Assembly (NCBI GenBank): GCA_030704615.1 | Contig: CM060731.1 | Span: 91,512,001 to 91,576,000, forward strand | Direction: 5' to 3' | DNA: 64,000 bases | DNA from: Takakia lepidozioides | Taxonomy: Eukaryota; Plantae; Bryophyta | In this document: piece after piece, positions 1-64,000 of the stretch | Position numbering within the stretch: the first letter of the stretch is position 1 | How the letters are laid out: every line of letters starts with the position of its first letter | Position numbers and translations under genes: made by a program | The notes under the pieces: model-generated | Told to the model about the DNA's origin: nothing | Database searches by the model: none | The model's input: only the letters and a program-made list of their open reading frames with translations

Positions 1-148
1 ATGTGAAGCACAGCTGCCCTTGTATGCGAAGCCTGGTTACGAGGTTTGTCTCGGAAATGCGGCACCGCATTCGCATTTTATGTTTTCGGTGGCACTCTGC
101 GAGTAGGTTGGTCTCAACTTTTGCTCACGCATGCTGACTGCCTGCAGG

Positions 149-2450
149 TATATGAAATACGTGCTCCTTCAGACAGGGGCCCTGCTCAAGAGCCCCCGTT
201 CTCATGGCTTGGACCGTGGCGGGCCCAGCTGTGTCTACACACCCGAGATGCAGAAACAATGGCATCCCGCGATCTTGTTGGATGCCCGTGGTACCTGGAC
301 ATGTCTGGCGGTATTGTTGACGAGTCTGAGAAAGATCTGCACGCCTTGGCAGAAGAGAAGAGAAAGGAAAGACGTGTCCCTGCTGGGCCAAAGTCGGCAA
401 AGAAATCTGCTGCTCTGGAAGAATCCAGAAAGGCAGCTGAGATGGCACAAAAGACGGTGGATGCAGCTGTGCAGGCCCAACAGAAGGGGTCGAAGAAGAG
501 GACTCGCCAGCAAGGAGCAGCAGCTGTTGTGACACCCGCCAAAACAAAGAAGCAGAACAGCCTGTTCAGGAAGAGGGTGAGGAAGAGGACTCCGATGGAG
601 ACTTGCAACCAGCCCACCCCCCCAAACGCAGGCTGCCTCCCCTGTGCCCACCGTTGTACGAGAGGCACGAGAACTGGCTCGGCAAAGAAGACACTCTTCA
701 ACCCCCCAGGGGGGCACCCTTTCGAGCCGGTGGAAATGAAAGAGGCCAAAAGTGGCTCCCGAAACAGTAGTCCAGTGTGTAAATGAGAGTTTCTTGGCGG
801 CTTTGATGGACGGGCAGCCAAGTTGGCATACATGAAGACCATGGAGGGTCTGAAGGGCAGAGCACTGAAGAAGGCGACTGCCGAAGAGCCTTCCGACACC
901 CCAAGATTTCAGAATATTGGTCTCCTTCTTTGAGAGGGTGTGTGCAGACAAAGGATTGTAGGAGGGGCGGAAATGCCACCGAGTGGTCTTGCGATATGAT
1001 CTCTTGGATATTCCGGACGGAGAGCCTGTGGAAGGACTGCAAGCTTTGCCATCTTGGAACAGGTACTCGGAGGACTTTTGGAAGAAAGGATTCGGGCTTG
1101 CCCGCATGGTGTTGGACGACAGAGGCTGTGTGGTTGTCTTGGCGAGCAGAGGAAAAAAACACTCAGACAAGAATTGCGAAGTGGACCCGCAAGAGCGCCG
1201 TCCCGATTCTGAAAAAGAAGTGGACGTGCATCAACACACTGGGCCTTCGGTCGGAAGGGAAGAAGGTGATTACGACACTGGCACTCGTCCATTCATTTGC
1301 TTGGGTGTTTTCAAATGCGGTGCCGCATTCGGTTTCTAATCGTTCCCCCCTGTGTATGCAGACGAAGCAGTTCGATGCATACTGCTTTGTGAAGGAGAAC
1401 TCCACCTTTGCTTTCCGGAAGGAGGGAGGAAATGTTGACCCGAACTGCGACCCCCTCGATTACGATGTTTTGTTCAACAACGTTCCCAAGGAACTTCTCC
1501 CTCATAGCCTCACTTCAACGGAACCCCTGCGGTACTCACGGACTCGGAGCCCTGCCTTCATTCAGACAATTATGGAGACATGCACAGACGTGGAGGGCAC
1601 AGTTGTTCTGCAAATTCTCGTTAGGATGTAGTTCGCAACATCTGAAGCGCCAAGTGGTAATGTGTGGATGGCATTGTAACAGGTGCCTCAATGTGGGCTG
1701 GGCGGTTTTCCGACCGGCACCTCTTTGCCTACGAGGAGGATTCATCCGTGGGGGATCCCATCTGGAAGGGCTGCAGCGGAATGTTAAGGCTCCCAACAGA
1801 GCGGAAGTCTCCTCGGATTCGTCGGAGTCCGAGGAAGACACAATGGACATTGATGCGGAGGAGAACCCGGAATACGAGTGAGTGCAAACATTGTAAGTTT
1901 GCAAAGCCTTCTGGGTCATTTTTGTCAAACGAATTTCCCGACTGTGGTTCTCATTAGTCTCGTTGATGATTGTCATGTGCAGGATTGCAGGGTCCGGGTC
2001 GAAACATGTAGGGCCTACACTTCCTGCCAGGAAGAATGTCCCGTTCTTTGCGAGGGCCGACTTCATGACGAGCCCGGTGAGGGACTACTCCCTTCCTAGT
2101 TATGCAGCTAAACTCGCAAATACAGCGATTAGAAGAAGTGAGAATCCAGTAAAGTAGAGCAGATTTTGGAGAGGGCTAGGGAGGACAGAAGGATAATGAA
2201 AGAGTTGGCAGCAGCTCAGACAGGTAGACGGGTACGAAAGTACATATGTGATTCAGCGGATGAGAGCGACGCAGACAGGGAGGAAGACGACCCAACGGAG
2301 GTGAGATGGACAGTTCCGCAAGGGGAAGATGAGATTTTTGAAGCCTGGCCAACGAGCAGTCCGCTGGAGATGAGAAAGGCACTGAGGGGGTGGAGGCGGA
2401 GCAGGACAGTCTAGAACAGGATGAGGATTCGGATGATTTTCAAGATTAAT
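149..2450 (+). pseudogene. Spliced beta-class DNA amino-(N4C/N6A) methyltransferase-like gene, copy A (frameshifted, motif I partly deleted)
   Basis: Approximate exons 149-1265, 1362-1602, 1684-1877, 1983-2450. Peptides D-M-I-x-LDIPDG...WNRYSEDFWKKGFGLARMVLDDRGCVVV, RSPAFIQTIMETCTDVEG and GASMWAGRFSDRHLFAYEED follow the N6_N4_Mtase motif order; acidic C-terminal tail. Confidence 0.6.
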
Positions 2451-2585
2451 AGAATTTTAATGAAGTCTCTGTAAATGTAAATTCTCTTCCAGAGTATATA
2501 AAGGAAATTCTGCCCGACATTCGTGACCCCCTCCAGTGTGCATTCCAGCCACACAATCGCCCAAACCACGACGCTCCCAAATCAG

Positions 2586-3385
2586 AAATGGGGCACCGCA
2601 TTTCCAAAATTTTGGCAACTCTAAGAACCTCTTTTGGAAATGCGGGCACCGCATTTCCAAAACAGGGGAGGGGACTAAATTTTCCATTTCAATGTTGGCA
2701 TAGTAAAAAGTAATCGGCCGATTAGAAATGCGGTGCCGCATTTCCAAAATTTCCTTTGTCCACACGCCAGTTTGGCCTCCCCGCTCATTGCATGGATGCC
2801 ACCACGCTTACAGAGGTCGAACAAGGAGGTCGAACAAGGAGGTCGAGATGGCGGAATGGAAATGCGGTGCCGCATTTCCATATTGGGGATGGTCGTTGGT
2901 TCGAACTGCAGGCCCATCAGCAAAAATTGGCACCGCATTCCATTGTAAAAAAAAAGTCGATGACGGACATGGAAATGCGGCGCCGCATTTCCAGAACGGA
3001 CATCGCAATTTGTCCATTTGCAGACCCTCTCACGGAAATGCGGTAACGCATTCCATCGCGCTGGTCGGAAATGTCACACTTTTCGAAGTGTTGGACGGAA
3101 ATGCGGCACCGCATTCCCTTGTCCAAAAAGAAGTTTCCATTGCCAAGCTGGAAATGCGTCGCCGCATTTGCAATGCCAACCTCGTTGTCTGTCCAATTTA
3201 TAGACCCGTGTTGGTATTTCGTGTACCTGGACGGAAATGATGCACAGCATTTCATTGTCCGACACTGAAATGCGGTTCATACATTTCCATGTCGGCATGG
3301 AAATTCGGCACCGCATTTCCTTGTCCCACATGGAAATGCGGTGCCGCATTTCGATGCCGACATGGAAATGCGGTGCCGCATTTCA
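2586..3385. repeat. Array 1 of the 22-bp palindrome GGAAATGCGG-NN-CCGCATTTCC (about 14 copies)
   Basis: Copies include starts at 2858, 2971, 3034, 3097, 3150, 3233, 3266, 3299, 3332 and 3364. Confidence 0.95.
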
Positions 3386-3641
3386 ATGTCCGACATGGCG
3401 TTACTCTGGTATATTCTTGACACATGACTCTCATACCGGTTACTCTGCTATATTCATCCGGACAGACACATTGTAGAAATGAGACATCAAATTGTAAACA
3501 GTGGGCCAATTCCGACAGTTATTCAACAGAATGAAACACAATCATACAGAAGTGAGGTACGATGGGTTTATTGATCGGACACGATGTCTCACATTTACCA
3601 ACTGCAGACAAAACTAAGCCCTTCCTCCTTCTACATGGGCT

Positions 3642-3796
3642 TCACCAAGTCGACGGAACTTCGATACCCCTCAAAACAAGCTCATCACTGCTGCGGCACC
3701 TCGGGTAAACTGCAATTCGGTCGTTCTGCTGCCCTTGCTGGAGCCGACGACAATGTCATGTCCATCAATGATACCACCATCATACATTGACAAGGT
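3642..3796 (-). pseudogene. 3' fragment of the unknown cargo gene X1
   Basis: Nucleotide homology to 9961-10116 (MYDGGIIDGHDIVV...ELV...IEV.STW stop). Confidence 0.8.
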
Positions 3797-4096
3797 GGCA
3801 AACGCCGGCGATGGTCACAAGTTACAACGGGAAACGAGATCCTGAAATGAGGGTTTAAAATAGTTGAGGGCCGAAGCGGAGGTCCTGTAGTGATTGGATC
3901 CAGACGAGGCGGGTCTGGTTGCACCGACATCGCCCACCGTCGTCCTCTTCCTCCGATTCCAAGAGAACTTGCTTGGATCGCGCATGATTGAATTGGTAAT
4001 TGGCAGTTGATAGATTGTGCTGGTCTGCTTCAAAGTGGTGGGTTGTTGTTTCCTTGCGGTTTGCGAACTCGGATTGTGAGGATTGAAGGTCTAGCG

Positions 4097-6917: not shown

Positions 6918-7737
6918 TTTCAGAAAATGTATTGATTGACCTGCACATGGAAGAAGCCTAAAAGAACATTTGATCTTCCTCTCTATTGCTCCATTCATTC
7001 AGTCATTCGTCCATGTTTCTTGCGGATCAGAACCTTGCAGGTAATCCTGGCCTTGTTCACTGCTGCCATTCCCTTGTTCCAGGGATTGAGTATGTAATTG
7101 GGTGGTTCTGTTAGACACTTTCCATGTGTGGATCAGCTGCAATTGAGTCTTGGTCTTGGCTCAATCAGCTGCACTCAAGAGGAATCATCTTCGTAGTTAT
7201 GAGATGCCTAGGAGTTATGCTTTGTTCTGTTTGAGCTGATCCTTGAGAAAGCAGTATCCATTGAGGGGCTTCAAATGGTATATTTTCTCATTGTCTCTCT
7301 CAGAAGCTAGGAGCTTCAAACAGGATAGTTCAATGATCGCCCATGTTTGAGATTCCACCTTGCAGAAACCAGCGTATAGTTGGAAAACTGAAAAAATCCA
7401 TTAATTGAAGGGGCCACAATCAGCTCTAACCTATTCTGCATTCTTGTCTACTCCGGTTCCCCCCGTCCTGTGTTCAACTACTAACAGGTCTCTTCCTAAG
7501 AGACATCCATCCCTTGGATATACAGACAGTCGAGATTTTTGTTGCTGTATTCAAGCAATACAGCTTGCAGCTTGTATTCAGGTGACCAACAATATGTGAA
7601 AGAAGGAGAAAGGGGTAGATGTGGGGCATATAACTCTCCACTAGTCTATACCAGTCAAAACAGTGAATATATAATGAACTTCCAAGATTCCCAGTGATTG
7701 AAAGAGAAGGAGAAATGTGATTAACAGTACCAAGATT

Positions 7738-9270
7738 CTACCAATCTTGAAAATCATCACTATCGTCATCCTGTCCTTGACTGTCCTGCTCCCCTTCCAC
7801 CCTGTCATTGCCTTTCTCATGTCCAGCGGACTGCTCGTTGGCCAGGCTTCCGAAAATCCCATCTTCCCCTTGCGGAACTGACCATCTCACCTCCGTTGGG
7901 TCGTCGTCCTCCCTGTCTGCATCGCTCTCTTCCGCTGAATCACATATATACTTTCGCACCCGTTTACCTGTCTCAGCTGCTGCCAACTCTTTCCTTATCC
8001 TTCTGTCTTCCCTAGCCCTCTCCAAAATCAGCTCTATTTTACTGGGATTCTCACATCGTCTAATCGCTATATTTGCAAGTTTAGCTGCATAACTAGGAAG
8101 GGAGTAGTCCTTCACCGGGCTCTTCATGAAGTCGGTCCTCGCAAAGAACGGGACATTCTTCCTGGCAAGAAATGCAGGCCCTACAGGTTTCGACCCGGAT
8201 CCTGGAATCCTGCACATAGCAATCACCCACGAGACCAATGAGAACCACAGTCCGGAAATGCGTGTGACAAAAAATCACCCAGAAGGCTTTGCAAACTTAC
8301 AATGTTTGCACTCACTCGTATTCCGGGTTCTCCTCGGCATCATTGTCCATTGTCTCTTCCTCCGAGTCCGACGAATCATCCAAGGTATCTTTGGCTTCGA
8401 TGGGAGCCTTCACATTCCGTTGAAGCCCTTCCAGATGGGATCCCTAGACGGATGTGTCCTCCTCGTAGGCAAACAGGTGCCGGTCGGAAAATCGCCCAGC
8501 CCACATTGAGGCACCTATTACAATGCCATCCACTCATTAAAAATTGGCCCTTCACACATGGCGAATTTGAACAAAATGAGAATTCATAGAACAACATAGT
8601 ACAAGAATCCGCATACATGTTCCACAGATGAGGTCCAGCACTCTGCCTTCCAGGTCAGTGCATGCCTCCATAATTGTCTGGATGAAGACAGGGCTCCGAG
8701 TCTGTGAATACCGCAGGGGATCCGTTGAAGTGAGGCTATGGGGGAGGAGTTCCGTGGGAACGTTGTTGAACATGACGTCGTAATCGATGGGGTCGCAGTT
8801 CGGGTCAACCAGCAATCCCTCCTTCCGGAAAGCAAGGATTGAGTTCTCCTTCACAAAGCAGTATGCATCGAACTGCTTTGTCTGCATACACAGTGGGGAA
8901 CGATTAGAAATCGAATACGACACCGCATTTCAAAACATGTTACAAAATGAAAGGACGATTGCGAATGTTACCTTCATCCCTTCCGACCGAAGGCCCAATG
9001 TGTTGATGTATGTCCACTTCTTCTTAAGAATTGGGACGGCGCTCTTGCGGGTCCACTTCGCAATTCCTGTCTCCGTGTTTTTGCCTCTGCTCGCCAGGAC
9101 AACCACACAGCCTCTGTCGTCCAACACCATGTGGGCGAGCCCGGATCCTTTCTTCCAAAAGTCCTCGAAGTACCTATTCCAAGATGGCAAAGCTTGCAGT
9201 CCTTCCACAGGCTCTCCATCTGGAATATCCAAGATGATCATATCGCAAGACCACTCGGTGGCTTTTCCGC
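7738..9270 (-). pseudogene. Beta-class DNA amino-methyltransferase-like gene, copy B (3' half)
   Basis: DMIILDIPDG (motif IV-like, about 9216-9244), LAHMVLDDRGCVVV, RSPVFIQTIMEACTDLEGRVLDLICGT (motif I, about 8620-8700), next exon ASMWAGRFSDRHLFAYEED; in-frame stops present. Confidence 0.65.
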
Positions 9271-9283
9271 CGATGACGGACAT

Positions 9284-9685
9284 GGAAATGCAATGCCGCA
9301 TTTCCAGAACGGACATCCTTGTTTGTCCAATTCCAGACCTTTTCACGGAAATGCGGCAAGGCATTCCATCGTGTTGGACGGAAATGCGGTGCCGCATTCC
9401 ATTGTCCAATACGAAATTTTGATGACAGACATGGAAAGGCGGTGCCACATTTCCAGAACGGACATGGACATGCAATGGCGATTGGACATGCATTGGTGAT
9501 TGGACATGCTTGGACAATTCAAGGTCCAATATGGAAATGCGGTGCCCCATTAGGAATTTGAAGTATGGAAATGCCATGTCAAGAAATGAAATGCGGTACC
9601 GCATTTCTGTTACGACCACAATGGAGGAAAGGGAGCTGCCAGAAATCGCTGCATGGAGAAAAATGAAATGCGGTGCCGCATTTCC
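9284..9685. repeat. Array 2 of the 22-bp palindrome
   Basis: Copies at about 9284, 9347, 9380, 9433, 9533, 9587 and 9664; homologous to 2958-3390. Confidence 0.9.
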
Positions 9686-9960
9686 GAGCTTGGGCATATA
9701 GATGTTTCCTTTTACTCATACATGGATTTCCTTCACCTCAGGACTCTGATATCGCTGACTCTGGTATATTCATGTGGACAGACACATTATAAAAATGAGA
9801 CCACAAATTGTAAACAATGGGCCAATTACAGTAGTTCTTGAACACAATGAAACACTGCACATAGAAGTGAGGGACGATGGGTTGTTTTATTGATCGAACA
9901 CGGTGTCTCACATTTAGCAACTCCAAACAAATCTAAGCCCTTCTGCCTTCTACATGGGCG

Positions 9961-10539
9961 TCACCAAGTCGACGAAACTTCGATAGCCCTAAAAACAAGC
10001 TCATTACTGACGCGGCACCTCCAGGTAAACTGCAATGCGGTCGTTCTCGTGCCCTTGGTGGAGCTGACGACAATGTCATGCCCATCAATGATACCATCAT
10101 CATACATTGACAAGGTAATTGTGGGCCTCATGTGCCCGTGCGATTTGTCTTCGCAACTCAGCCGAATGTCTCCATACACTGGAAGAGCGGAGTGAACTCC
10201 ACGAATATAGTTTTCCCCGATGCCGTCCTCCCTGGTCCACTGGCAGTAGTTCCAGCGCCAAAGCGAGGCCGTGCGTGATCTATCCGGCATCCCATTCCAG
10301 CTTGGTATATCGAGGTCAACAATTTTCAGGACCCACGGACCGCATTGACCTTCGCCCTCACCTCGCTCAAAGCGGTAACAGCCCTCCAAATACTCCATTG
10401 CGCGCAAAGACTCCCGCTTGATTCGAGAAGCGTCTGTAAAAACAGAGAGCCAGACAATGATGTCTCCTGATTCTGGTTTGAACATAGCATAATCGTGGCC
10501 ATGATAGGGGCAGTCAGCAAGATTGCGGCGGCACGGCAT
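9961..10539 (-). CDS. Unknown protein X1 (192 aa), TE cargo
   Basis: Open intronless ORF that aligns end to end with X2 (DCPY, SGDI.IW, Y.FERG, PW.L.I.D.D.PS, RWN.CQWT, YGDIR, GHDIVV, QFTWR, ELVFRA.EV). Confidence 0.7.
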   Translation of the reverse strand: MPCRRNLADCPYHGHDYAMFKPESGDIIVWLSVFTDASRIKRESLRAMEYLEGCYRFERGEGEGQCGPWVLKIVDLDIPSWNGMPDRSRTASLWRWNYCQWTREDGIGENYIRGVHSALPVYGDIRLSCEDKSHGHMRPTITLSMYDDGIIDGHDIVVSSTKGTRTTALQFTWRCRVSNELVFRAIEVSSTW

Positions 10540-11113
10540 CCTTGCAAAAGATTACTGGAGTACGCTCAATGACAGCAGCTCCCGGATGGAGGAGGCAGCA
10601 GCGCGGTGGCTGGAAGAAGTTCAAGGACATGACAATGTGTTTGCAAACGCTGCAATTCTTCACTAACACTCCAGGGCACATTTAAATATCCCCCCTACAG
10701 GAACCTGCACGGATGAAGATTGGCTGCTCCATGAATGTAGTCGTTTCAGTTTCCTTCCGTGCCATGCAAACTATGGGCAGTAAGTGCCAGGTGGGCCTAT
10801 AGCCACTCAAGACGACGAAGTCCATCCCCCCTTCGATGTAAATGCGGCGCCAAATTTCTATCCGGGGGATAGAGTTCAGTGGCAGATTTCAAACTATTCC
10901 CTGTGGATGAGAAAGAGGTATCGGTTCATCCGCCGCTGGCGTGATGAACACGTTACACGATGATTGGTGGGTACGTGGGACCCAGATGCTCCATTATTGG
11001 AGCCCACACTGCTCTTCCGCTTCTCATCATTTCGAAAATCAGAGGGCTTCGTTGCTGTCCGCAAGGTCATTGTCATCGGCATCAAAAACATCCTCAGGAC
11101 CTCCTTTGCAAGG

Positions 11114-11677
11114 ATGTCGTGCTTCCGGAACCGGGACGACTGCCCTTATGGAGGCTTCGATTTTGCAATGTATTCGGCCACATCGGGAGACATCGTTATC
11201 TGGCACACAGTTTACACAGAAGATAGTGGGGCGAATGTGGAAACATTGTCCGCTTTTGAGAATATCCCAGGCCACTACGCCTTCGAGCGGGGTGACGATC
11301 TTGGTCTGAGGAGTCCGTGGCTCCTGCGCATCCTTGATTCCGATTTTCCTAGCTACGACGGGCACCCATGCAGAAGAATGCGCACTGCTATGCTGTTGCG
11401 GTGGAACTGCTGCCAGTGGACGTGGGTGGACTCCATCGGAGAGACGTATACTCCTGAAGGAGTGCGCTCCTCTTCTCCATTGTATGGGGACATTCGCATT
11501 GGTGTGGACGACGAAAACGTGAAGCTTTCCATATTCGATGGTGGTATGATTGAAGGGCACGACATTGTGGTGAACATCATCAAGGGCGGTATAACGGCTG
11601 CAATCCAATTTACCTGGAGGAGCCCGATGACTCATGAGCTAGTTTTCAGAGCAGTCGAAGTCCCATTGACAACGTGA
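11114..11677 (+). CDS. Unknown protein X2 (187 aa from the ATG at 11114), paralog of X1
   Basis: Open ORF; shares the start context TTTGCAAGGATG and conserved peptide blocks with X1. Confidence 0.7.
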   Translation: MSCFRNRDDCPYGGFDFAMYSATSGDIVIWHTVYTEDSGANVETLSAFENIPGHYAFERGDDLGLRSPWLLRILDSDFPSYDGHPCRRMRTAMLLRWNCCQWTWVDSIGETYTPEGVRSSSPLYGDIRIGVDDENVKLSIFDGGMIEGHDIVVNIIKGGITAAIQFTWRSPMTHELVFRAVEVPLTT

Positions 11678-12087
11678 CTTGTATTCAGAAGGCATAGGGC
11701 TAAAGATTTGTTTGCACCACCAGCACAATAGACGTGCTTCAAATGCAATTCATGTGGATCAATAAAAACCCCATTGTGCCTTCTTTTGTTCTATTCTGTA
11801 TCCATCGTTCCCAGAATGCATCATTCCTCATTTCGTTTGGGATTGGGAGTGTGGGTGGATTTTGCAAGTGGCTGGGAGGCTGAAATGGGCCCCCATTGTA
11901 CAGAGCAGTATCACCCTACCATTTGCGAAACATTGCCTTTCAATATGTAATTCTAAAAAACATTGCCGAACTTCCTTCATCGGGAGGTCCTTCTCCCCCT
12001 ATGACCGCGACACCCTAAACCCTATTCCCGCGGACACTCATTTCTGGAAAATAGTCCTGCTCATGTTTTTTTCCACACTTATGACTT

Positions 12088-12124
12088 TGCTCATGGCTCA
12101 TGCCGCTCATGGCTCATGAAATAG
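12088..12124 (+). repeat. (GCTCATG)n-AAATAG element terminus
   Basis: Same motif at 63298-63384; variant (GCTCACG)n-CCGTAG at 39905-39968. Confidence 0.75.
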
Positions 12125-13478
12125 CAGCCCCCAACTTTGGAAATTTGAGGCTGAGACCAACTTGTCCCACATGCTCTTCCAAGTGAAGGATGTCGGGAAG
12201 CAGGGGGTGCAAGAGTTTGCCAATTCGCTCAGTGCCGACCTACTGCGCAAGTCGGAGGCAAAGGCTGACATAACCTGGTGTAGACTGAGTATGGATGCCA
12301 TGGTGGACTACATATTTTGGGTACAACGCCCAACTGTTCCCCGGACGTAATCAGTCTTTTCTCCCCCAATAGAAGAAAAAGTGTGGACCAGGATTTCTAA
12401 ACTTATGTGCGCATTGTTGACAGACGAAAATTGAGCAGGATTTGGCACATGCGCGGAGGTTCTACATGGAGTCAGAGGAGAAGAAACTAACCCTCCCGAC
12501 ACTGGAATCGTATCTGAAAGCTGCGGAGGCGAAAGCTCGCGTCAAGTACAAGTCGCAGATGGTGAAGTACGTGGCCATTGCTGATCCCGCCCTTGGTGCC
12601 GACTTTCTGGTGGAGGTGGGGAAGCACTACTCCCGCGCTCTTAAGCCCACAATGACACTGGAGAAGCTGCATTGTCTAGCCACAGCTTGTGTGGATGCAA
12701 CAGAGAAGGTTACACATTCTTAAGCTGCCTTCTCTTGTGGCAACAATTCGTTTTCGTGGTGTCTTTCACTTACTAATATGCACGCTGGTTGGATAGACCC
12801 GGTGGCTCCAAATCTGGAATGGGTCCCAGAGTACAAGGGATATGTGGACGCCGAATTTCCAGTGTCGGTGCCAGCCACCCTCGAGACTTAGCCATTTTCG
12901 GGGCACGGAACTGGAAATTCGGCGCCATTTTCCCAGGCTGGGTCCGAAAGTGGCTAAGTCCCAGAAAGGGCTGCCTCGCCCTTAGGAAAAATGGCGCCGA
13001 ATTACCACTTTCGTTGCCCGGCACTTTGGGGAGCCGGGACCAGCGGGCCCACCACCCCGCATGAAAATTCGGCGCCATTTTTGCAGTTTCTTGACTAAAC
13101 ATTAACCTCATTCCCGAGACCTGATTCTCTGTGGGTTTCTTGAAGGCAGGTACTGCAAGTTCTCCCTGTTGGAGAAAGGGCATCTGTCCTTCGAGCCGCC
13201 ATTCTTCCTCGCATGGAGGAACCCTAGCGCTGATTCTATGTACACTGACGTTATCGTGAAGGAGTGGCATCTGGAGCATTTGTGCGACTGTTCGTGGTAT
13301 GTGGACCTTCCGCCCGGAGGGCTCGACGCCTCCGAGTTTCAATTGAAGCTAGATGCTGAGGCCCGCCGAAACCGGGCTCCGCTGCCTCCAAAGGAGGCGA
13401 AAGCGCTTGCCAAGTCCAGGAAAGCGGCAGAGCTTGCTCAGGCAGGTATTCAGGAGAAGTTGAATGAGAAGAAAAAAA
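12125..13478 (+). pseudogene. N-terminal exons of a divergent relative (copy C) of the MTase-like cargo gene
   Basis: EPPFF...C.WY.D...SRKAAELAQ at 13150-13478 aligns with EPPFS...CPWYLD...SRKAAEMAQ at 190-450. Confidence 0.55.
12850..13081. repeat. Variant palindromes GGAAATTCGGCGCCATTTTCC inside an intron of copy C
   Basis: About four copies in both orientations between the exons. Confidence 0.7.
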
Positions 13479-14030
13479 CACTACAACAGATCGCGGTATA
13501 TATGACTTTATATATGACTATCCCGTAGTCATAAACGGTACATATGACTGCAATGACTTCAAGTCATGCAAACCAAGTCAATACAATGAGTACAGTATGG
13601 TCGGTCATGGATGACTGCAGTCAGATGAACCAAGTGATACATCTCACTGTCATGTGGCAGTCATATGTACTTCTATCATACATGACTTAGTGTGCTGCTA
13701 CAAACTGTACACCTGTCTCTTTTTAATAAGTCCAGGAGGTTTTGTGGATGTGCGCCATATGGCGTCTCCAGAAACTGCCACGTGGCATATCCATGAGGAG
13801 GTCCTACAGTCATTATCTTGACTACAAACATGCTAATATCTAGACACGTGGCATATAATGAGGAGGTCTTGCAGTCATTGTCCTAACTACAAACATCCTA
13901 ATATGTGGACACGTGGCATCATATGAGGGGTTTGTTAAATGCATTTCACAGTCAGAACCACGACTATGCTTATAAGAGCTCGTTGCCAGGTGTTTTATGG
14001 TCGATATGACACGTGTCAATGCATGATTGA
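13479..14030 (+). mobile_element. CACTA (En/Spm) terminus with ATGACT-rich subterminal repeats
   Basis: Starts CACTACAACAGATCGCGGTATATATGACT. Confidence 0.75.
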
Positions 14031-56945: not shown

Positions 56946-58214
56946 TATTGGAAATCAACTCCTGACCAAGTTACTACTACCTAGAGTTACTGTGATGACA
57001 AGTCAGGCTTCCATAATAGCAGTGCTGACAAGTCACACTTAACAATAGAGATAAGCCTCGGTTAGCTAAAAGATAGCTAAAGTTAGCTTCAGTTATTAGT
57101 GACTCAAGTCATTGTACCAGAATAGCAGGTGGAGATAACTTAAGTAAAAGCATGGAGTTATGCTATAGTTATCTCAGCTATTTCTGGATTAGACTTTGAA
57201 TATAAATAGGGAGAGCTCGGAGGGTGGACACACAACTTGTTGTGGTCTTATGGTTGGGTGGAGAGTTCTCAGTAATCAGTTCATCTTTTATCTCTATTCT
57301 CTGTCGAATTCCAACATAGTATCAGAGCAAGGTTATGTCTGAGAGATAGAAGGAGATGAGTATTTGATTTACAACCAATAGGCTTGAGTGCTTGGGTTTA
57401 AATCTGAAAGCTTGAATGCTTGGAATTGAGTGCTTGGTGTCAGATCTGAAAGCTTGAGTGCTTGGAGTTAGATCTGAAAGTTTGAGGGTGTTTTATAGTT
57501 GGCAAAACATCAAACTAGTATCATGGCACCTTCTGCTGATCATACCCGAGTGGAGAAGTTAGATGGTCACTTATATGCACGTGACTGCTTCAAGGAAAAA
57601 CTAGACGATGAGAAAAAAAAGAGGTTTCAAAATGAGATTTCAGCATTGGTTGAAAGGACTGAACTTCTTGTTGTAGCTTTGTCAATCTCTACGAGTTGCA
57701 GAGATGTATGGTTCATTGATTCAGGGGCATCTCAGCACATGACGTTCCAGAAGGAAGCATTCTCAACCGTCAAAGAACTCTCTGTGGGACACAAGGTGTA
57801 TCTTGGAGACAGCAGTACTAGTCTTGATATCCATGGAAAAGTTTCAATTATCATGTGGAGTGTTGAAGGAGATCGGAGGAGTTCTCTTTGTTCCTGGTTT
57901 GACAAAGAACCTATTGTCAGTTAGTCAGCTAACTGAGCAAGGTCTTACGGTTGAATTTTCTACCAATCTTTGCTGGGTGAAGTTTGGCAGTGAAGTGATA
58001 GCTGAGGCAGTGAAAGATGCAAGATTGTACAAGCTGATTGGGGTTGTCCAGGCTTTACATGCGGAGTGTACTACTACTCTCAAGCAGAGTGACCTCTGGC
58101 ATCAGAGACATGGACATGTCTCAATGCAAAGTTTGGCATGCATGTCAGCTAACAATCTGGTTAAGGGCATGGATCTTACAGGAGATCGGATCTTGAGTTT
58201 TTTGTGACCATGTG
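56946..58214 (+). mobile_element. Ty1/Copia remnant: LTR 56946-57316, PBS, internally deleted gag-protease
   Basis: T(A)TTGGAA...TTCCAACA ends, T(A)GTATCAGAGC, WFIDSGASQHMT and LWHQRHGH. Confidence 0.85.
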
Positions 58215-58270
58215 ATTTCTTACTGTCTTACTATTTCGGCATATGTTTCACAATTTTGAAACATCCCGGA

Positions 58271-58610
58271 CGCAATGCGGCACCGCATTTCCATTCAACC
58301 ATGTGCCCGGTAGTACACAGGACCGAAATGCGGCACCGCATTTCCGTTCCTGCCTATCCAAGGTGTCCCAGTCGACGGAAATTAGGTGCCGCGTTTCTGT
58401 TCCACCGTGGCTTACTTGTCCCATTCGACCGAAATGCGGTACCGCATTTCCATTCCACCATGTGCCTGTTGGTACAGTGGATGGAAATGCGGTACCGCAT
58501 TTCCGTTCCAGCACTAGTTTGGTTTCCCCGTTGACGGAAATGCGGTGCCGCATTTCCGATCACAATCAGAGAGAGGACGATGTCGAACGGGAATGCGGCA
58601 CCGCATTTCC
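58271..58610. repeat. Array 3: seven 22-bp palindromes at an exact 53-bp period
   Basis: Starts at 58271, 58324, 58377, 58430, 58483, 58536 and 58589. Confidence 0.95.
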
Positions 58611-58739: not shown

Positions 58740-59885
58740 CTGCATCGAGAATATGGCAAGATCCACCCTTAGGAAAAACTGTCAGGAGATGTTATTGCCT
58801 CGTCGAATTGGCCATCATTGTCATACATACTGGATATGGAATCGGAGCTCCCACCTTCATGCATGTATCTTGAAACATTCTGCTCGACTTCAATGTGCGA
58901 CTTCCAATCGTCGATGGCCTCGCAGTTCCAATTATGTGGTGCCAGTAAGCCTTGGTCTGTTGCTATAGGGAACCTCGCACTTGCCAACTTCGTGCGGTGT
59001 TCGATGGCTCCCAATTCCTACGCTATAGTTTGCTGTCCTCTGCAACTTGGGAGAGCCTGGATCCCAAACGAGGGAGGACTTTGCAGAGTGACTGAAACTT
59101 ACCTTTGTTCCAAATTCAAGCTCAAATCGGGCACAGTTTATTTGGAAGAAGAAAAGAAGGATGTTCCTAGATAGGTTGATGAGACCATTGTCGTGCTAGG
59201 TGCCGAAGGAGGTTGCGGAATCGAGTGGCACGTACCCCCATCAGACACCATCTTGTACCGCGCTGTTGGAATGCCCATTCCCTTCCCGAATCAGTCGCTG
59301 CCCACACCATCCACAAAGGAGTCGGGAAACCGACAGGCGGCCACTGCCAATAGAGAGGTATGCAACGATAATCATTCCCGACCTGGACCGTCAAGACCCT
59401 CCATAGCTTCTCGTGTGGAGGTATTTGACATTTCAGACGAGGAAGATGAGTGCATTGAGGTCCCCATGTCCTCCACACGGTCGTTCAAATCCGACATGGA
59501 CGTCTCTGCAGGTGCTATGCATGTACCCCCGAGCATAACTCCAACCCGCTCCATTGTGCAGCTCTTACGGCAACATCACCTCGACGGTTCTCGCTCCGAA
59601 CTGGCTGCCCTCGACTATGCCAAATTTCCAGTCAGGAAGGTAACGTATCTGCCTCCCAAAGTCGATGGTAATGTGATCTTCGAGTTTCCACCTGTTACTT
59701 CGTCAAACAAAGCCTCAGGGATGTTAACAGACATGGATCGAAAGCATGACGGACACCCCTGGTGTGTGACGAAGACCAGTAGCACGAAAATTGTTGATGG
59801 TGTTTGTGTACGATATGCCCTGTGTGCGGGGAAACTGAGGTGCCTCAATCCCGCTTGTTTCCACTTTCTCTCCAAAGGAGGGCGG
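58740..59885 (+). pseudogene. N-terminal part of the GCM-type transposase
   Basis: YLPPKVDGNVIFEFPP...DGHPWCVTKTS...CAGKLRCLNPAC. Confidence 0.7.
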
Positions 59886-60249
59886 AGAGCCCTGAAGACT
59901 CGGTGTGACTATCTTACTATGACGAAGGCCGCAACTACCAGTACCTACGATGTTACTTGGAAATGCGGCGCCGCATTTCCTTGCCGAGGGTCCAATGAGG
60001 AAAGCAAGTTTGGGAGAGCAGAAAAATAGGAACCCCCCAAAAAACAAAAATACAATGACGGGGAAACATAAGTTAATGGCATAGTATTATCTTAGTTTGA
60101 GCAGGTTACTGGTAGGCAAGACATAAGTCGAACCTTTATGTGGCCAAAGACAGAGGTACTTGCAGCAGTACAGTTCTACTATAGCTGAAACTCCGAAAAG
60201 GATGGGCGTAACATTGTCTTGTGGCTCGCAAGCCAAACTCACTGGTCCC

Positions 60250-62855
60250 CTGGATCCATATTCAGAAGATTGTAGATCTCTTGGGGGCTCAACCCTGGTG
60301 CATGTATGAAGTGATGAGTTGTGGAATACACCGGAGTTTCTTTAGGTACACGTAGTAGAGATGCTTGCAAGGGCAGTATGATGCCCCCTTGTTCGCCATG
60401 ATCTGGAAGTCGGTGCAATTGCAGGTGGGTAATTATGAAATGGTGATGGTGTACACCTCATTGCGGACAGCTGAGCCTGCCGTGGCCATTTGATACATAC
60501 GCCCGAAGCCTGGTGGGGGCACTTCTGTTGAGTTCTGGATTGTACAGTTCATCCGAAGTGCATTCCCCATTCTTGTCTCGTTCACTTCCGAGGGAGGTCG
60601 CCGCCTCTTCGGTTTGCCCCAACGGTGTGTAGGATGCTTAGAGTTGTTGCGTCCCATTATTCTTGCTCTCACAGGGGTCGGTGGTGGAGGCTGTGGAAGC
60701 GGAAATGGTTGTCTGGGGACGTCAGTGTGCTGCACCATCCGAAATCCTACGCCAGTAAGGGCGTCGGCCTCAACCTGACTCAGATCGCATCCTGGTTCCA
60801 CCGGCCACACCGGGAGAGCCTCTGGCATTGTTTGTATGCCGTACTTGGGCTTTCCATATACGCAAGTCATAATGTCATGCCTGCAGAACCAGAACTGGGT
60901 AGTTGTCGCCTCCGAAAACTTTGCATGGACAAATCTTCCTGTAAAAGTAGGAGCAGGGACAGCCCCATCTGGATTCCTCCTTATCATCTCTAAACAACGT
61001 TGTCGTTTATCCACTCGAATTGCAGAACACGTGCCTCGAAATGCCGGCCTTGTGCGAGCAATTCTCCACTGTGACGTAGACACAGTCGTCTCCACAATGG
61101 CTTGGCCATACTGCATAACAGCGTGCGGAATCTGGGGCAGGCGAGCAGTGGGAATTTCTCGCACGGAATCCCTGCTTGAAGGCGATGGGGATCTGGAAAC
61201 TCTTGGGCTTCCACTGTTGGAAGACTCATTGTGCGGCAACATGACGGGACTTCGAGGTGTTGTCCGAATGTTCCTGTCGGATCTCCAGGAATCCTCTTCG
61301 CACCCGGGTTCCTCTTCAATCCTCCGCCTCACATGGCGAGTATGGACGTCCCCCTCTAGGTGTTCACCTCTGCGGTGCAGAGGCGTCCCTTTGATCTTCT
61401 CTCGCAATGTTGTCGCTCATTTCAGTGGATTCTTCGACCTCGAAGCTGTTTGTACCAACAATTCCTCCCTATCCGGCCCAAAGCCCCATTGTTTCCCGCT
61501 CAGGAACTTATAGTACCTGGCTTGCTGCATGATCGTTTTGTTGATGTCCTCCATTGTGGCCGTCACCACGTCCACCAGATGTGCGGCAGAAGACGTTTGC
61601 TAGGAGAAGTGGACTGATTCTGCCATATTCGTGTTCGGCATGTCCGTGTCGGAATCCAGGCACCGCTCCTACAAGGACAGAAACAATGGTGAGGGAAAAA
61701 TGGAAAGGTCCGTAATAGAACGACAATTGCAGCAAAAGTCTGGCATCATACCTCTCGCATATACTGTCCAAACTGTCCATACCGGAAATGCCACCACCCC
61801 AACCAGCTCTGCAAGGCTCCCAGATTGGTTGTGTCCACTGCACCTGACGTGTTCCACTAAGCCTCGATGATAGCAAACTTAACCTCCGCGTCATCAAATG
61901 TGGGTGCATCCTTCCACGCCGTACAAAGGACACGGTGTTCAGCTTGGAATGAGCTTGCAACAAATTTGGTAGTGTAGTGAGATAGACTTTGCATCCAATG
62001 GAATCCACATGATCTCTCTTTCCCCTCCATTGGAACATTGGGGTCCTCACCATACACGCGCAGCACCGCTGCCCAGTTGGCCTGAGCGTTGTCTGCCATG
62101 AATCCCGTGAAATTGGGCTTTGGCAAACCCGCCCTTGCCATATGCTCGTTTATGCCCTCCCACAGATGTATCTCCGACTGTGTGTCCTCCCCTTTCATCT
62201 CGCAGATTGCAATCGTCATGAGCCTCTTGGAGTGGAGTGACCAAGTCGACTCCGCTCCCAGGCCCACACGTTGACATTTTGAAAATGTAACAACGATCAG
62301 ATTCGCTGCCTTGCCCTAGAAACCTGCTACCTTGGATGTAGTCATATCCAATCTTTCTTTTCACCTCCAGAATTGAGTGCATGTCCGACCCCCGGCCGAA
62401 CTCCTGCTTGCAAGATATGATGTGATTCCGCACATTCGGACTACAAAGGTGCGAGACGGACTCCAACATGTCAAGCATCTCCTCTTCATTCAAGGGCACT
62501 TGGTCCTTTCCATCTTCAGACATAATTTTGCCAAGAGCAATCTTGTGGGCTGCCTTGAGCTGAATCTGCTTTGATCTGGCTCCGGGGCTCAATTTCACCT
62601 CTTCTTTTATGATGTCGTGTGCTTCCTGCACAGCCTCCCGGATGTTGTCTCTCGCCAAGGGGTGGCAGTGGACCCCAACGTGTATGCAAGCTCGTGTTAA
62701 GTCCGGGAGCAAATGGATTACATAATATTGATTGGCTCTGCACATGGACATGCATGTCGGTGGTTCTTTGCAATGTGCGCACTTGAAAGTACCCGCTGGA
62801 GCCTAGCTAGAGACAATGAATGGATGATGGGTTGTGCTAGTCCAATCCGCTCGTC
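60250..62855 (-). pseudogene. C-terminal part of the GCM-type transposase (DDE core plus SWIM)
   Basis: FKCAHCK...GVHCHP, FKMSTCG, FMADNAQAN, CGFHW and CNCTDF...CKH; homologous to 36850-39588. Confidence 0.78.
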
Positions 62856-63509
62856 CCATTGCCGAACGCCCCAAAAATCTCGCACGTGCGAGCCCTAATG
62901 CGGCACCGCATTTCCCAGTTGAATCGCAAACCTTTCCCGCCGAATGCAGGAAGAAGAAAGAATTTTGAAGCACTGCAGACTCTATTGTTGCATGGGGATC
63001 ATACAATCGCGGCAAAAGGGTCAGGTTCATTCCAATGTTAGGGCATATAAAACCGCGGAATACTCTATACAGGCCAGTATGCGGCGTCCTTTTGCTGTGG
63101 TATACTGGATTCCTCGTTGCACGGTCAGTCATTTCCATGAGCAGATCTAAAAAACCATGAGCGGAATTGTTACTGACGACATATCTTCGCCGCATTACAG
63201 GATCTGGAACTTCCAAAAACAGCAATGTCAACAAAAAAAAAAAAACTATTATTTTAATACTTTTTTAATCTGCCGCATTTCCAAATTTGGAGGAGTCCGC
63301 TCATGAAAACCACGTGTCTTGGACTTCGGCTCACCGCTCATGCGGCTCATGGCTCATGGCTCATGGTTTCTGCTCATGAAATAGTTCCGAACAAGAGCTC
63401 CGAACAAGACGACACCTCCGGGCGAAGTGCAGAGCTCTCGAACCACGCGTACCCCAAAAAACACTAAGTCCCAACCTGCACACTACGACCTAGCAACCCT
63501 AAATTCGAG

Positions 63510-63760
63510 CCAAGTGCATTATCATTCGTTCATACAATAGTTGCGTTATCATTCGTTCATACGTTCATCCAGTGCACAAAAGTTATGTTTGAGACGTTCA
63601 TCCAATAGTTGTCAGCAAGGCGTTTGTTTATCATTCGTTCAGATAAATAGTTGTTTTGTTTCACTAACCTTTCATACGTTCATCCAATAGCTGCCAGCAA
63701 GGCGTTTGTTTATCATTCGTTCAGATAATTCAATTGTTTTGTTTCATTAACCTCAACCAG
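63510..63760 (+). repeat. Short degenerate tandem repeats (TTATCATTCGTTCA), probably subterminal to another element
   Basis: At least four copies; CACTACGACC lies upstream at 63481. Confidence 0.5.
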
Positions 63761-64000
63761 CACACAATTAGTTTACTATTAATGTGCTAGGTCAGTGAAA
63801 AAGTAGTTAAATGTTTTTACTTCTTATTATCCACATATATATTGTGATTACACGTGCCATTGTTTAACTGGTTGTCTCAGTCAGTTCATTTTAGGTAGTC
63901 AAAGTCTCTCACTACAGTCAAAATTTTCGCGGTTGTCTAACGCGTCGAATATTTTAAAATAAATTTTGACTGCAAAATGGTTGGAACAGTCAATGACAAC

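Follow-up and report, generated by a model that had tools for sequence, protein, structure and literature searches.

A phased array of palindromes upstream of a decayed transposase gene in Takakia lepidozioides as candidate transposase docking sites

Seven 22-bp dyads with the consensus GGAAATGCGG-YR-CCGCATTTCC span positions 58271–58610 of a 64-kb stretch of the Takakia lepidozioides genome (hereafter, the window), where they lie in the 5' flank of a decayed transposase gene. The array may best be explained as a set of phased docking sites for a protein of the element itself, with the GCM-type domain of the transposase as the candidate reader, and we assign this explanation a probability of roughly 0.4.

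In the mechanism we propose, a decayed DNA transposon of the GCM-MULE-SWIM type within a plant genome would have the array as one of its cis-elements. The seven dyad-symmetric docking sites, which follow one another at five helical turns in the 5' flank of the transposase gene, would be read by the transposase's own N-terminal zinc-finger domain of the GCM/WRKY type, with two domains seated on the two ATGCGG half-sites of each palindrome. The phased row could then support a cooperative nucleoprotein complex that would mark the DNA of the element for transposition, as subterminal repeats do, and through which the transposase could regulate its own promoter. The positions and conservation of the palindromes can be read directly from the DNA; the binder and the effect of binding are what we infer from them. 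The coordinates of the features discussed below are collected in Table 1.

Table 1. Features of the array, the transposase gene and the helper region (positions refer to the 64-kb window)
Feature	Position	Strand	Description
Helper gene	147..2450	+	N6/N4-methyltransferase-like (predicted), spliced; cut by window start
Sister array, 13 sites	2584..3385	.	spacings 52.5–134 bp, among them 63 (twice), 53 and four of 32–33.5 bp
Second sister array, 7 sites	9284..9685	.	partial duplicate of the 2584–3385 array, ~14% diverged
Four AATTCGGCGCCATTTT copies, both orientations	12838..13084	.	intron of paralogous helper gene (~12442–13528)
Left flank of array	58196..58270	.	from truncated copia fragment (ORF end 58207) to unit 1
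Array of seven 22-bp palindromes	58271..58610	.	unit of 22-bp core and 31-bp spacer; 159-bp higher-order structure
Transposase exon 1	59193..59951	+	first half of GCM/WRKY-like DNA-binding domain; GT donor at 59952
Perfect palindrome	59959..59980	.	8 bp past exon 1, first intron; left inversion junction
Remainder of transposase gene	60260..62802	-	inverted relative to exon 1
Palindrome	62894..62915	.	91 bp upstream of exon 2 on the minus strand; right inversion junction

Organization of the array

The units of the array start at positions 58271, 58324, 58377, 58430, 58483, 58536 and 58589, corresponding to a start-to-start distance of 53 bp in six of six steps. This bears out the initial annotation of the region, made from the sequence by itself, which had described seven palindromic 22-bp repeats with a period of exactly 53 bp six times over. 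Units 5 and 6 are perfect 22-bp palindromes; one or two mismatches to the consensus are found in units 1, 2, 4 and 7, and four in unit 3. Besides the 53-bp period, TRF returned periods of 106 and 159 bp, indicative of a higher-order repeat. Across the window, the 16-bp palindrome core occurs 29 times with up to two mismatches, versus 0.13 occurrences expected from shuffled sequences, and a looser scan yielded 35 sites versus 0–2 in shuffles.

Within the array, the 22-bp cores have a mean pairwise identity of 0.85, and the 31-bp spacers one of 0.46. With the exception of spacer 6, the spacers are 45–77% identical among themselves. Spacers 1, 4 and 7 resemble one another (identities of 0.77, 0.61 and 0.55), as do spacers 2 and 5 (0.61), and both groupings had been recognized beforehand; the pair 2/3 (0.68) can be added to them. 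Spacer 6 is unlike all of the others (0.16–0.32), yet it too is 31 bp long. The spacers are diverged copies of one another, in agreement with the earlier view that the array grew by tandem duplication and not by spacer acquisition. The spacer ends GTTC and GAC had been described as an extension of the hairpin, and in single-strand folds they do extend the stem, to 10–13 bp. A further proposal, that unit length is constrained because the repeats serve as phased protein-binding sites, fits the conserved cores, the free centre and the equal length of the unrelated spacer 6.

By eye, a possible decayed half-unit can be made out to the left of unit 1 (~58232–58242). Within 58425–58510, spacers of the 1/4/7 class are partly palindromic themselves, and over the same interval units 4 and 5 together with the intervening spacer form a single near-perfect hairpin of 86 nt (-35 kcal/mol as DNA).

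Conservation of the half-sites and helical phasing

The positions GAAATGCGG are 83–100% conserved among the 60 half-sites examined in the window, with weak conservation of the outer flank. In every one of the 30 sites with a two-base centre, these two bases form a pyrimidine-purine step (TG in 12, CA in 10, CG in 4 and TA in 4). The CpG of the arm is retained in 51 of the 60 half-sites (85%), as compared with a central CpG in 4 of the 30 sites (13%); within the seven-unit array, the corresponding counts are 13/14 and 0/7. This contrast between arm and centre could not arise from methylation-driven decay acting uniformly on a dead copy. It indicates that the arms were either selected in an active lineage, in which the centre would be free or flexible, or protected. 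The half-site pattern could correspond to two contacted half-sites that flank a free centre and, taken together with the unchanged spacer length, it looks like a dimer-binding site repeated in phase.

At 10.5 bp per turn, the 53-bp period amounts to 5.05 turns of the helix. In the sister array at 2584–3385, adjacent sites are separated by 52.5, 87.5, 134, 113, 63, 63, 53, 83, 33.5, 32.5, 33 and 32 bp. A Rayleigh analysis of these spacings at 10.5 bp gave R = 0.61 (p ~0.01) with a mean phase near zero, so that helical phasing of the sister array is suggestive but not strong. The period itself clearly differs between the three arrays of the window that share the palindrome (32–33, 53 and 63 bp, or irregular), and the conservation of period among copies that the initial annotation had proposed as a check was not found.

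The transposase gene beside the array

The array is situated ~0.6 kb upstream of the exon-1 ORF and ~0.66 kb upstream of the first in-frame ATG (59271). It had earlier been placed between the end of the element and the transposase: the location upstream of the transposase gene holds, whereas an element end at ~58200 could not be established. The left junction of the array region is formed by a truncated copia fragment. Neither terminal inverted repeats nor a target-site duplication of 9–11 bp were found, the left flank pairing with nothing up to position 64000. Given the truncation or rearrangement of this copy, their absence is hardly informative about the family to which the element belongs.

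Exon 1 was assigned by tblastx to the related loci L002 and L003 and by alignment with the relative protein P0001 and with L002:9266-9937. The plus-strand ORF at 59193–60029 aligns with the N-terminal part of both P0001 and L002:9266-9937; these two had been found via the minus-strand ORFs of 60260–62802, and in each of them both parts belong to one continuous protein. The relatives' protein consists, in order, of an N-terminal Cys/His-rich domain (W...CxGxxxC...CxxC...GxHxHP), a helical linker, a core with the signature 'MAD...CxxH' and a C-terminal SWIM finger. In the window, the minus-strand segment encodes the second half of the zinc finger (CxxC...HxH), the core with 'MAD...CxxH' and, at ~60361–60423, the SWIM signature (CxC...CxH). 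The gene carries at least one frameshift, between the ORF ending at 62047 and that starting at 62267, and an in-frame stop directly ahead of the SWIM signature. Judged by these lesions, the transposase copy of the window is dead.

The two parts of the gene lie on opposite strands, and the arrangement was read from unjoined sequence, the exons having been searched separately. Exon 1 ends in phase 0 at 59951 and is followed by GT, and the remainder starts in phase 0 at 62802 after a pyrimidine tract and AG. Approximately 30 bp around the palindromes at 59959–59980 and 62894–62915 are inverted copies of each other (83%). Between the flanking cysteines there are 38 residues here, in line with the 41 of P0001. 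In the simplest reading, the 2.9-kb segment between the two palindromes became inverted; prior to this event, one palindrome would have been located inside a GT-AG first intron of ~120 nt in phase 0, and a second copy past the 3' end of the gene. That both inversion junctions fall at near-identical palindromes suggests that these sequences favour recombination, barring an assembly error at 59952–62915.

Two further repeats were observed in the vicinity of the gene. The regions 63133–63381, in the right flank of the transposase, and 12060–12118, in the 5' region of the second helper gene, share a block of the heptamer GCTCATG/CATGAGC followed by 'GAAATAG'; this block may be a second cis-motif of the elements. 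To the right of the element, at 63588–63753, an AT-rich unit of 82 bp is tandemly duplicated with 90% identity.

Assignment of the transposase family

The N-terminus of P0001 was modelled with a pLDDT of 65.8, and the top Foldseek match for this model among 350,542 PDB chains was the GCM domain-DNA complex 1odh (probability 0.97, E 0.011). VIA-align of the model gave Z-scores, in the noise range, of 5.7 for GCM (137 of 157 residues aligned) and 5.5 for WRKY33 (78 of 79). The nearest Atlas shapes and features were clusters of the SWIM-type, GCM, MULE, FAR1 and ZSWIM kinds. Sub-threshold Pfam matches were obtained to SWIM in four copies (E 0.014–0.075) and, weakly, to Transposase_mut in just one relative, P0004 (E 0.015). 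Pfam scans returned nothing for 25 whole transposase relatives and no family above threshold for any ORF of the element, and GCM was not found when PDB sequences were searched with a profile. An N-terminal WRKY-GCM1 domain, a catalytic core and a SWIM finger are the usual components of MULE transposases, and the WRKY-GCM1 domain has been proposed both to recognize sites and to act in self-regulation (PMC1702500). The architecture predicted here matches that of MULE transposases, although each single line of evidence is weak and all family calls fall below curated thresholds.

The palindrome elsewhere in the window and the helper genes

The sister array at 2584–3385 starts right after the stop codon of a helper gene (147–2450), which also carries one palindrome in each of two introns (53–74 and 1311–1332). 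The exons of this gene align weakly with ORFs beside the transposase in L001 and L003 (E 7e-5 and 6.5e-6, respectively), and one helper-like ORF beside the transposase of the relatives matches Pfam N6_N4_Mtase with an E-value of 1e-5. Methyltransferase motif IV is degenerate, reading DIPD in the window helper and DQPH in L001 instead of DPPY, and the helper enzyme is therefore probably catalytically inactive. A 'WDGNH(R/K/Q)' motif resembling that of ParB/DndB proteins (Pfam DndB, E 0.049) was seen in the helper ORFs of the distant relatives L001–L003. Within the window, the family of the studied palindrome shows no ParB-like domain, its helper gene being cut by the window start; a weak ParB-like remnant at 12147–12326 (E 0.016) goes with the other palindrome family.

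The helper, its array and the flank are present in two copies (966–3796 and 7732–10116) that are ~86% identical. In the copy at 7732–10116 the gene segment is inverted relative to the array, the orientation of the array and flank being the same in both copies. The junction at 9271 is 13 bp from a palindrome, and on this reading of the two copies it is a second rearrangement at palindrome sites. The intron of the paralogous helper gene that bears AATTCGGCGCCATTTT corresponds to the helper intron with the palindrome at 53–74, and its motif is related but different. A CGG-YR-CCG core is common to the studied palindrome, to AATTCGGCGCCATTTT and to the GTTCGG-YR-CCGAAC motif of other elements described below.

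A family of ORFs of ~190–240 aa was also observed next to the sister arrays and 5' of the second helper gene, at 9961–10539 (minus strand), 10964–11677 (plus strand) and 3645–3919 (minus strand). Two of its copies face each other head to head, and their full-length sequences share 52% identity. Among 1.84 billion representative proteins, a profile search gave 0 matches for this family, and no Pfam match was obtained. The ORFs 9961–10539 and 10964–11677 were considered as the missing ParB domain and rejected: word search and profile search were both empty, no alignment with the 'WDGNHR' ORFs of the relatives was found, and the AlphaFold model (pLDDT 31) was useless for this purpose.

Candidate readers and alternative explanations

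Several observations favour the transposase as the reader. The array is upstream of exon 1, and the same palindrome is found in intron 1 and past the 3' end of the gene. Docking sites are further supported by spacers that share between 16 and 77% mutual identity and are all exactly 31 bp long. Moreover, ATGCGG in the half-site is identical to the first six bases of the GCM octamer ATGCGGGT (PMC2172107). This match, which has an a priori expectation of roughly 0.2–0.5% and was noticed after the fact, may be due to chance, because related elements use TTCGG arms (12838–13084 and L004) or unrelated palindromes (L003). GCM and WRKY domains act as monomers on asymmetric sites of 6–8 bp; the 9–10 bp conserved per half-site and the strict dyad speak against a reader of this kind, as do several relatives that are without repeated palindromes and the difference in period among the three arrays. 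We are rather doubtful of the more specific proposition that the GCM-type domain of a plant Mutator-type transposase would bind the element's own DNA as dimers, on a helically phased operator array ahead of the transposase gene, and would recognize there the ATGCGG core used by animal GCM factors. The same cis-element may be read by the helper instead, a ParB/DndB-like and N6/N4-methyltransferase-like protein that is probably catalytically dead. By analogy with sopC, the helper would load onto the array and from there coat or mark the element, for instance for self-recognition or for resistance to silencing. Such a role would account for the palindromes in two helper introns, for the 13-site array directly following the helper stop codon and for the different motif in the corresponding intron of the paralogous helper; the transposase relatives are in turn linked to 'WDGNH(R/K/Q)' ORFs with an N6_N4_Mtase-like C-terminus. 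Strict dyads of 16–22 bp suit dimeric helix-turn-helix proteins or the target recognition of methyltransferases, and precedents exist in the red-algal Plavaka arrays, the Ectocarpus Sola-1 accessory gene and F-plasmid sopC. However, the array at 58271–58610 has no helper next to it, with copia and LINE fragments to its left; the ParB-like domain is not visible in the truncated helper gene of this palindrome family, motif IV is degenerate and every domain call is sub-threshold. We hold the helper to be a somewhat less probable reader than the transposase.

Three explanations dispense with an element protein that docks at the array. A 53-bp unit with one palindrome may have expanded from one to three to seven by neutral duplication, so that the fixed period is merely inherited and the array has no function. 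The mutually alignable spacers and the 159-bp higher-order pattern agree with this, as do the dead state of the copy (frameshift, stop and inversion), the period that is not kept in the sister arrays and the scarcity of arrays among the relatives, most of which have none. It is nevertheless improbable on account of cores that are far better conserved than spacers (0.85 versus 0.46), arm CpGs that are retained while the central CpG is lost, the complete absence of length change in six spacers despite heavy substitution (including the unrelated but equally long spacer 6) and sister-array spacings that are quantised in ~10-bp steps. Transcription of the array into long hairpins, to be diced into small RNAs as a trigger of host silencing or for self-regulation of the element, is more improbable still: the array, folded as RNA, reaches -181 kcal/mol (z = -11.4 versus shuffles), with neighbouring units pairing as hairpins of 75–86 nt and miRNA-precursor-like Rfam matches at 31 bits, but any row of palindromes must fold in this way, the matches fall short of the gathering score of 49, at which no Rfam family was found, and single palindromes are dispersed in introns and flanks without such a role. 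The array also shares with CRISPR its regularly interspaced short palindromic repeats and constant spacer length, and had been called 'CRISPR-like' on these grounds; the likeness is one of appearance, in what reads as a eukaryotic transposon. The window contains copia sequence (GAG-pre-integrase, E 7e-9), PPR genes, an intron-split AIG1 GTPase gene, LINE-like sequence and many spliced genes, and no cas-like ORFs were seen in it. This eukaryotic context, the relatedness of the spacers and the presence of the repeat as single copies in introns and in irregularly spaced arrays together exclude CRISPR for all practical purposes. In 596 Gb of prokaryote genomes, the palindrome gave seven single matches, at chance level, and no arrays.

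Comparison with known systems

The general idea of a transposon with self-bound arrays of inverted repeats has already been published for algae. Giant Plavaka transposons of the red alga Bostrychia carry tandem inverted-repeat arrays beside accessory genes with a ParB domain (PAG3), and self-binding has been proposed for these arrays (Petroll et al. 2025, bioRxiv 10.1101/2025.02.11.637652); in Ectocarpus, Sola-1 has an accessory gene that combines ParB and methyltransferase domains (PMC12477816). Like these, the element studied here would be a eukaryotic cut-and-paste transposon with inverted-repeat arrays of its own and an accessory gene of bacterial type for DNA binding or modification, and self-binding is a proposal in both cases. 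The differences are that the genome is of the land-plant type, that the transposase is GCM/MULE/SWIM-like and not Plavaka or Sola, that the helper is methyltransferase-like and not 2OG-oxygenase-like, and that the palindrome is also scattered through introns. In addition, the array at 58271–58610 adjoins the transposase gene, unlike the accessory-gene arrays of the algae, whereas those at 2584–3385 and 9284–9685 adjoin the helper.

A bacterial parallel is provided by sopC of the F plasmid, in which a 43-bp unit is directly repeated 12 times and every unit contains a 16-bp inverted repeat to which SopB, a member of the ParB family, binds (PMC3177203). Both sopC and the plant array are built of fixed-unit direct repeats with one dyad-symmetric site each, at a period near whole helical turns (~4 for 43 bp and ~5 for 53 bp). 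Dyad sites of ~16 bp in direct repeats of fixed unit, as in ParB/parS-type systems, are present in the array. However, sopC is bacterial and acts in partition with a ParA ATPase, and nothing suggests segregation for the plant array.

Transposase-binding repeats are also familiar from the subterminal regions of plant transposons, as in the 12-bp TnpA motifs of En/Spm, the AAACGG motif of Ac and the MURA sites in the terminal repeats of Mu. Tandem subrepeats are found in the arms of Mutator/Foldback elements such as Tm1 (PMC3169594). The array resembles subterminal repeats in that many copies of a short, family-specific motif lie between the element end and the transposase gene, and in that the motif is presumed to be read by the N-terminal domain of the transposase. 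It differs from them in its strictly periodic 22-bp perfect dyads and additional intronic sites, where subterminal repeats are asymmetric and irregularly spaced; in the window copy, moreover, the true ends of the element are undefined. With CRISPR it shares short palindromic repeats and spacers of constant length, but its spacers are mutually related and neither cas genes nor a leader accompany it.

To this background the present copy adds a clean seven-unit array ahead of a transposase gene, the pattern of half-site, centre and CpG conservation, the replacement of spacer 6 by a sequence of the same length, and two inversions with junctions at palindromes. The value of a dead copy lies mainly in its being a well-resolved example. 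Should the palindromes dock the element's own proteins, they would constitute a clean and easily testable case of self-recognition by a eukaryotic transposon, for which the defined 20-bp dyad and the natural series of arrays spaced at 32, 53 and 63 bp are useful test material and the GCM-type transposase domain and the disabled ParB/methyltransferase-like helper are the two candidate readers. An idea so far proposed only for the giant transposons of algae would then extend to land plants, and the origin of the DNA specificity of GCM/WRKY-type factors might be explained. If the specific proposition of GCM-type reading were true, transposon self-recognition would be the source of the GCM recognition code, which would predate the transcription factors; palindromes and ParB/methyltransferase-like helper would together form a two-protein system of self-marking, not known to have been described in land plants. 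The coincidence of the palindromes with rearrangement breakpoints, seen for both inversions in the window, is also of relevance to genome stability and to assembly.

Related elements and searches for further copies

Relatives of the transposase were drawn from public assemblies. In L004 and L005, the motif GTTCGG-YR-CCGAAC is dispersed upstream of the transposase gene, in six copies that form no array; their transposase is an intact ORF of 611 aa and occurs on 11 contigs. In L003, four copies of an unrelated palindrome, ACCTCCTCGT-N3-ACGAGGAGGT, are located at 2696–3259, upstream of helper-like ORFs. No repeated palindromes were found within 10 kb of the transposase relatives in L001, L002, L006 and L007, and two scans of JGI metagenome contigs, for the 22-mer and for a two-site pattern, returned nothing. 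L007 does contain, at 8018–8220, a tandem repeat of a 23-bp unit with a CGTACG core, in at least nine copies, ~1.8 kb upstream of the P0057 ORF; its motif and period differ from those of the array studied here, and it occupies a comparable place.
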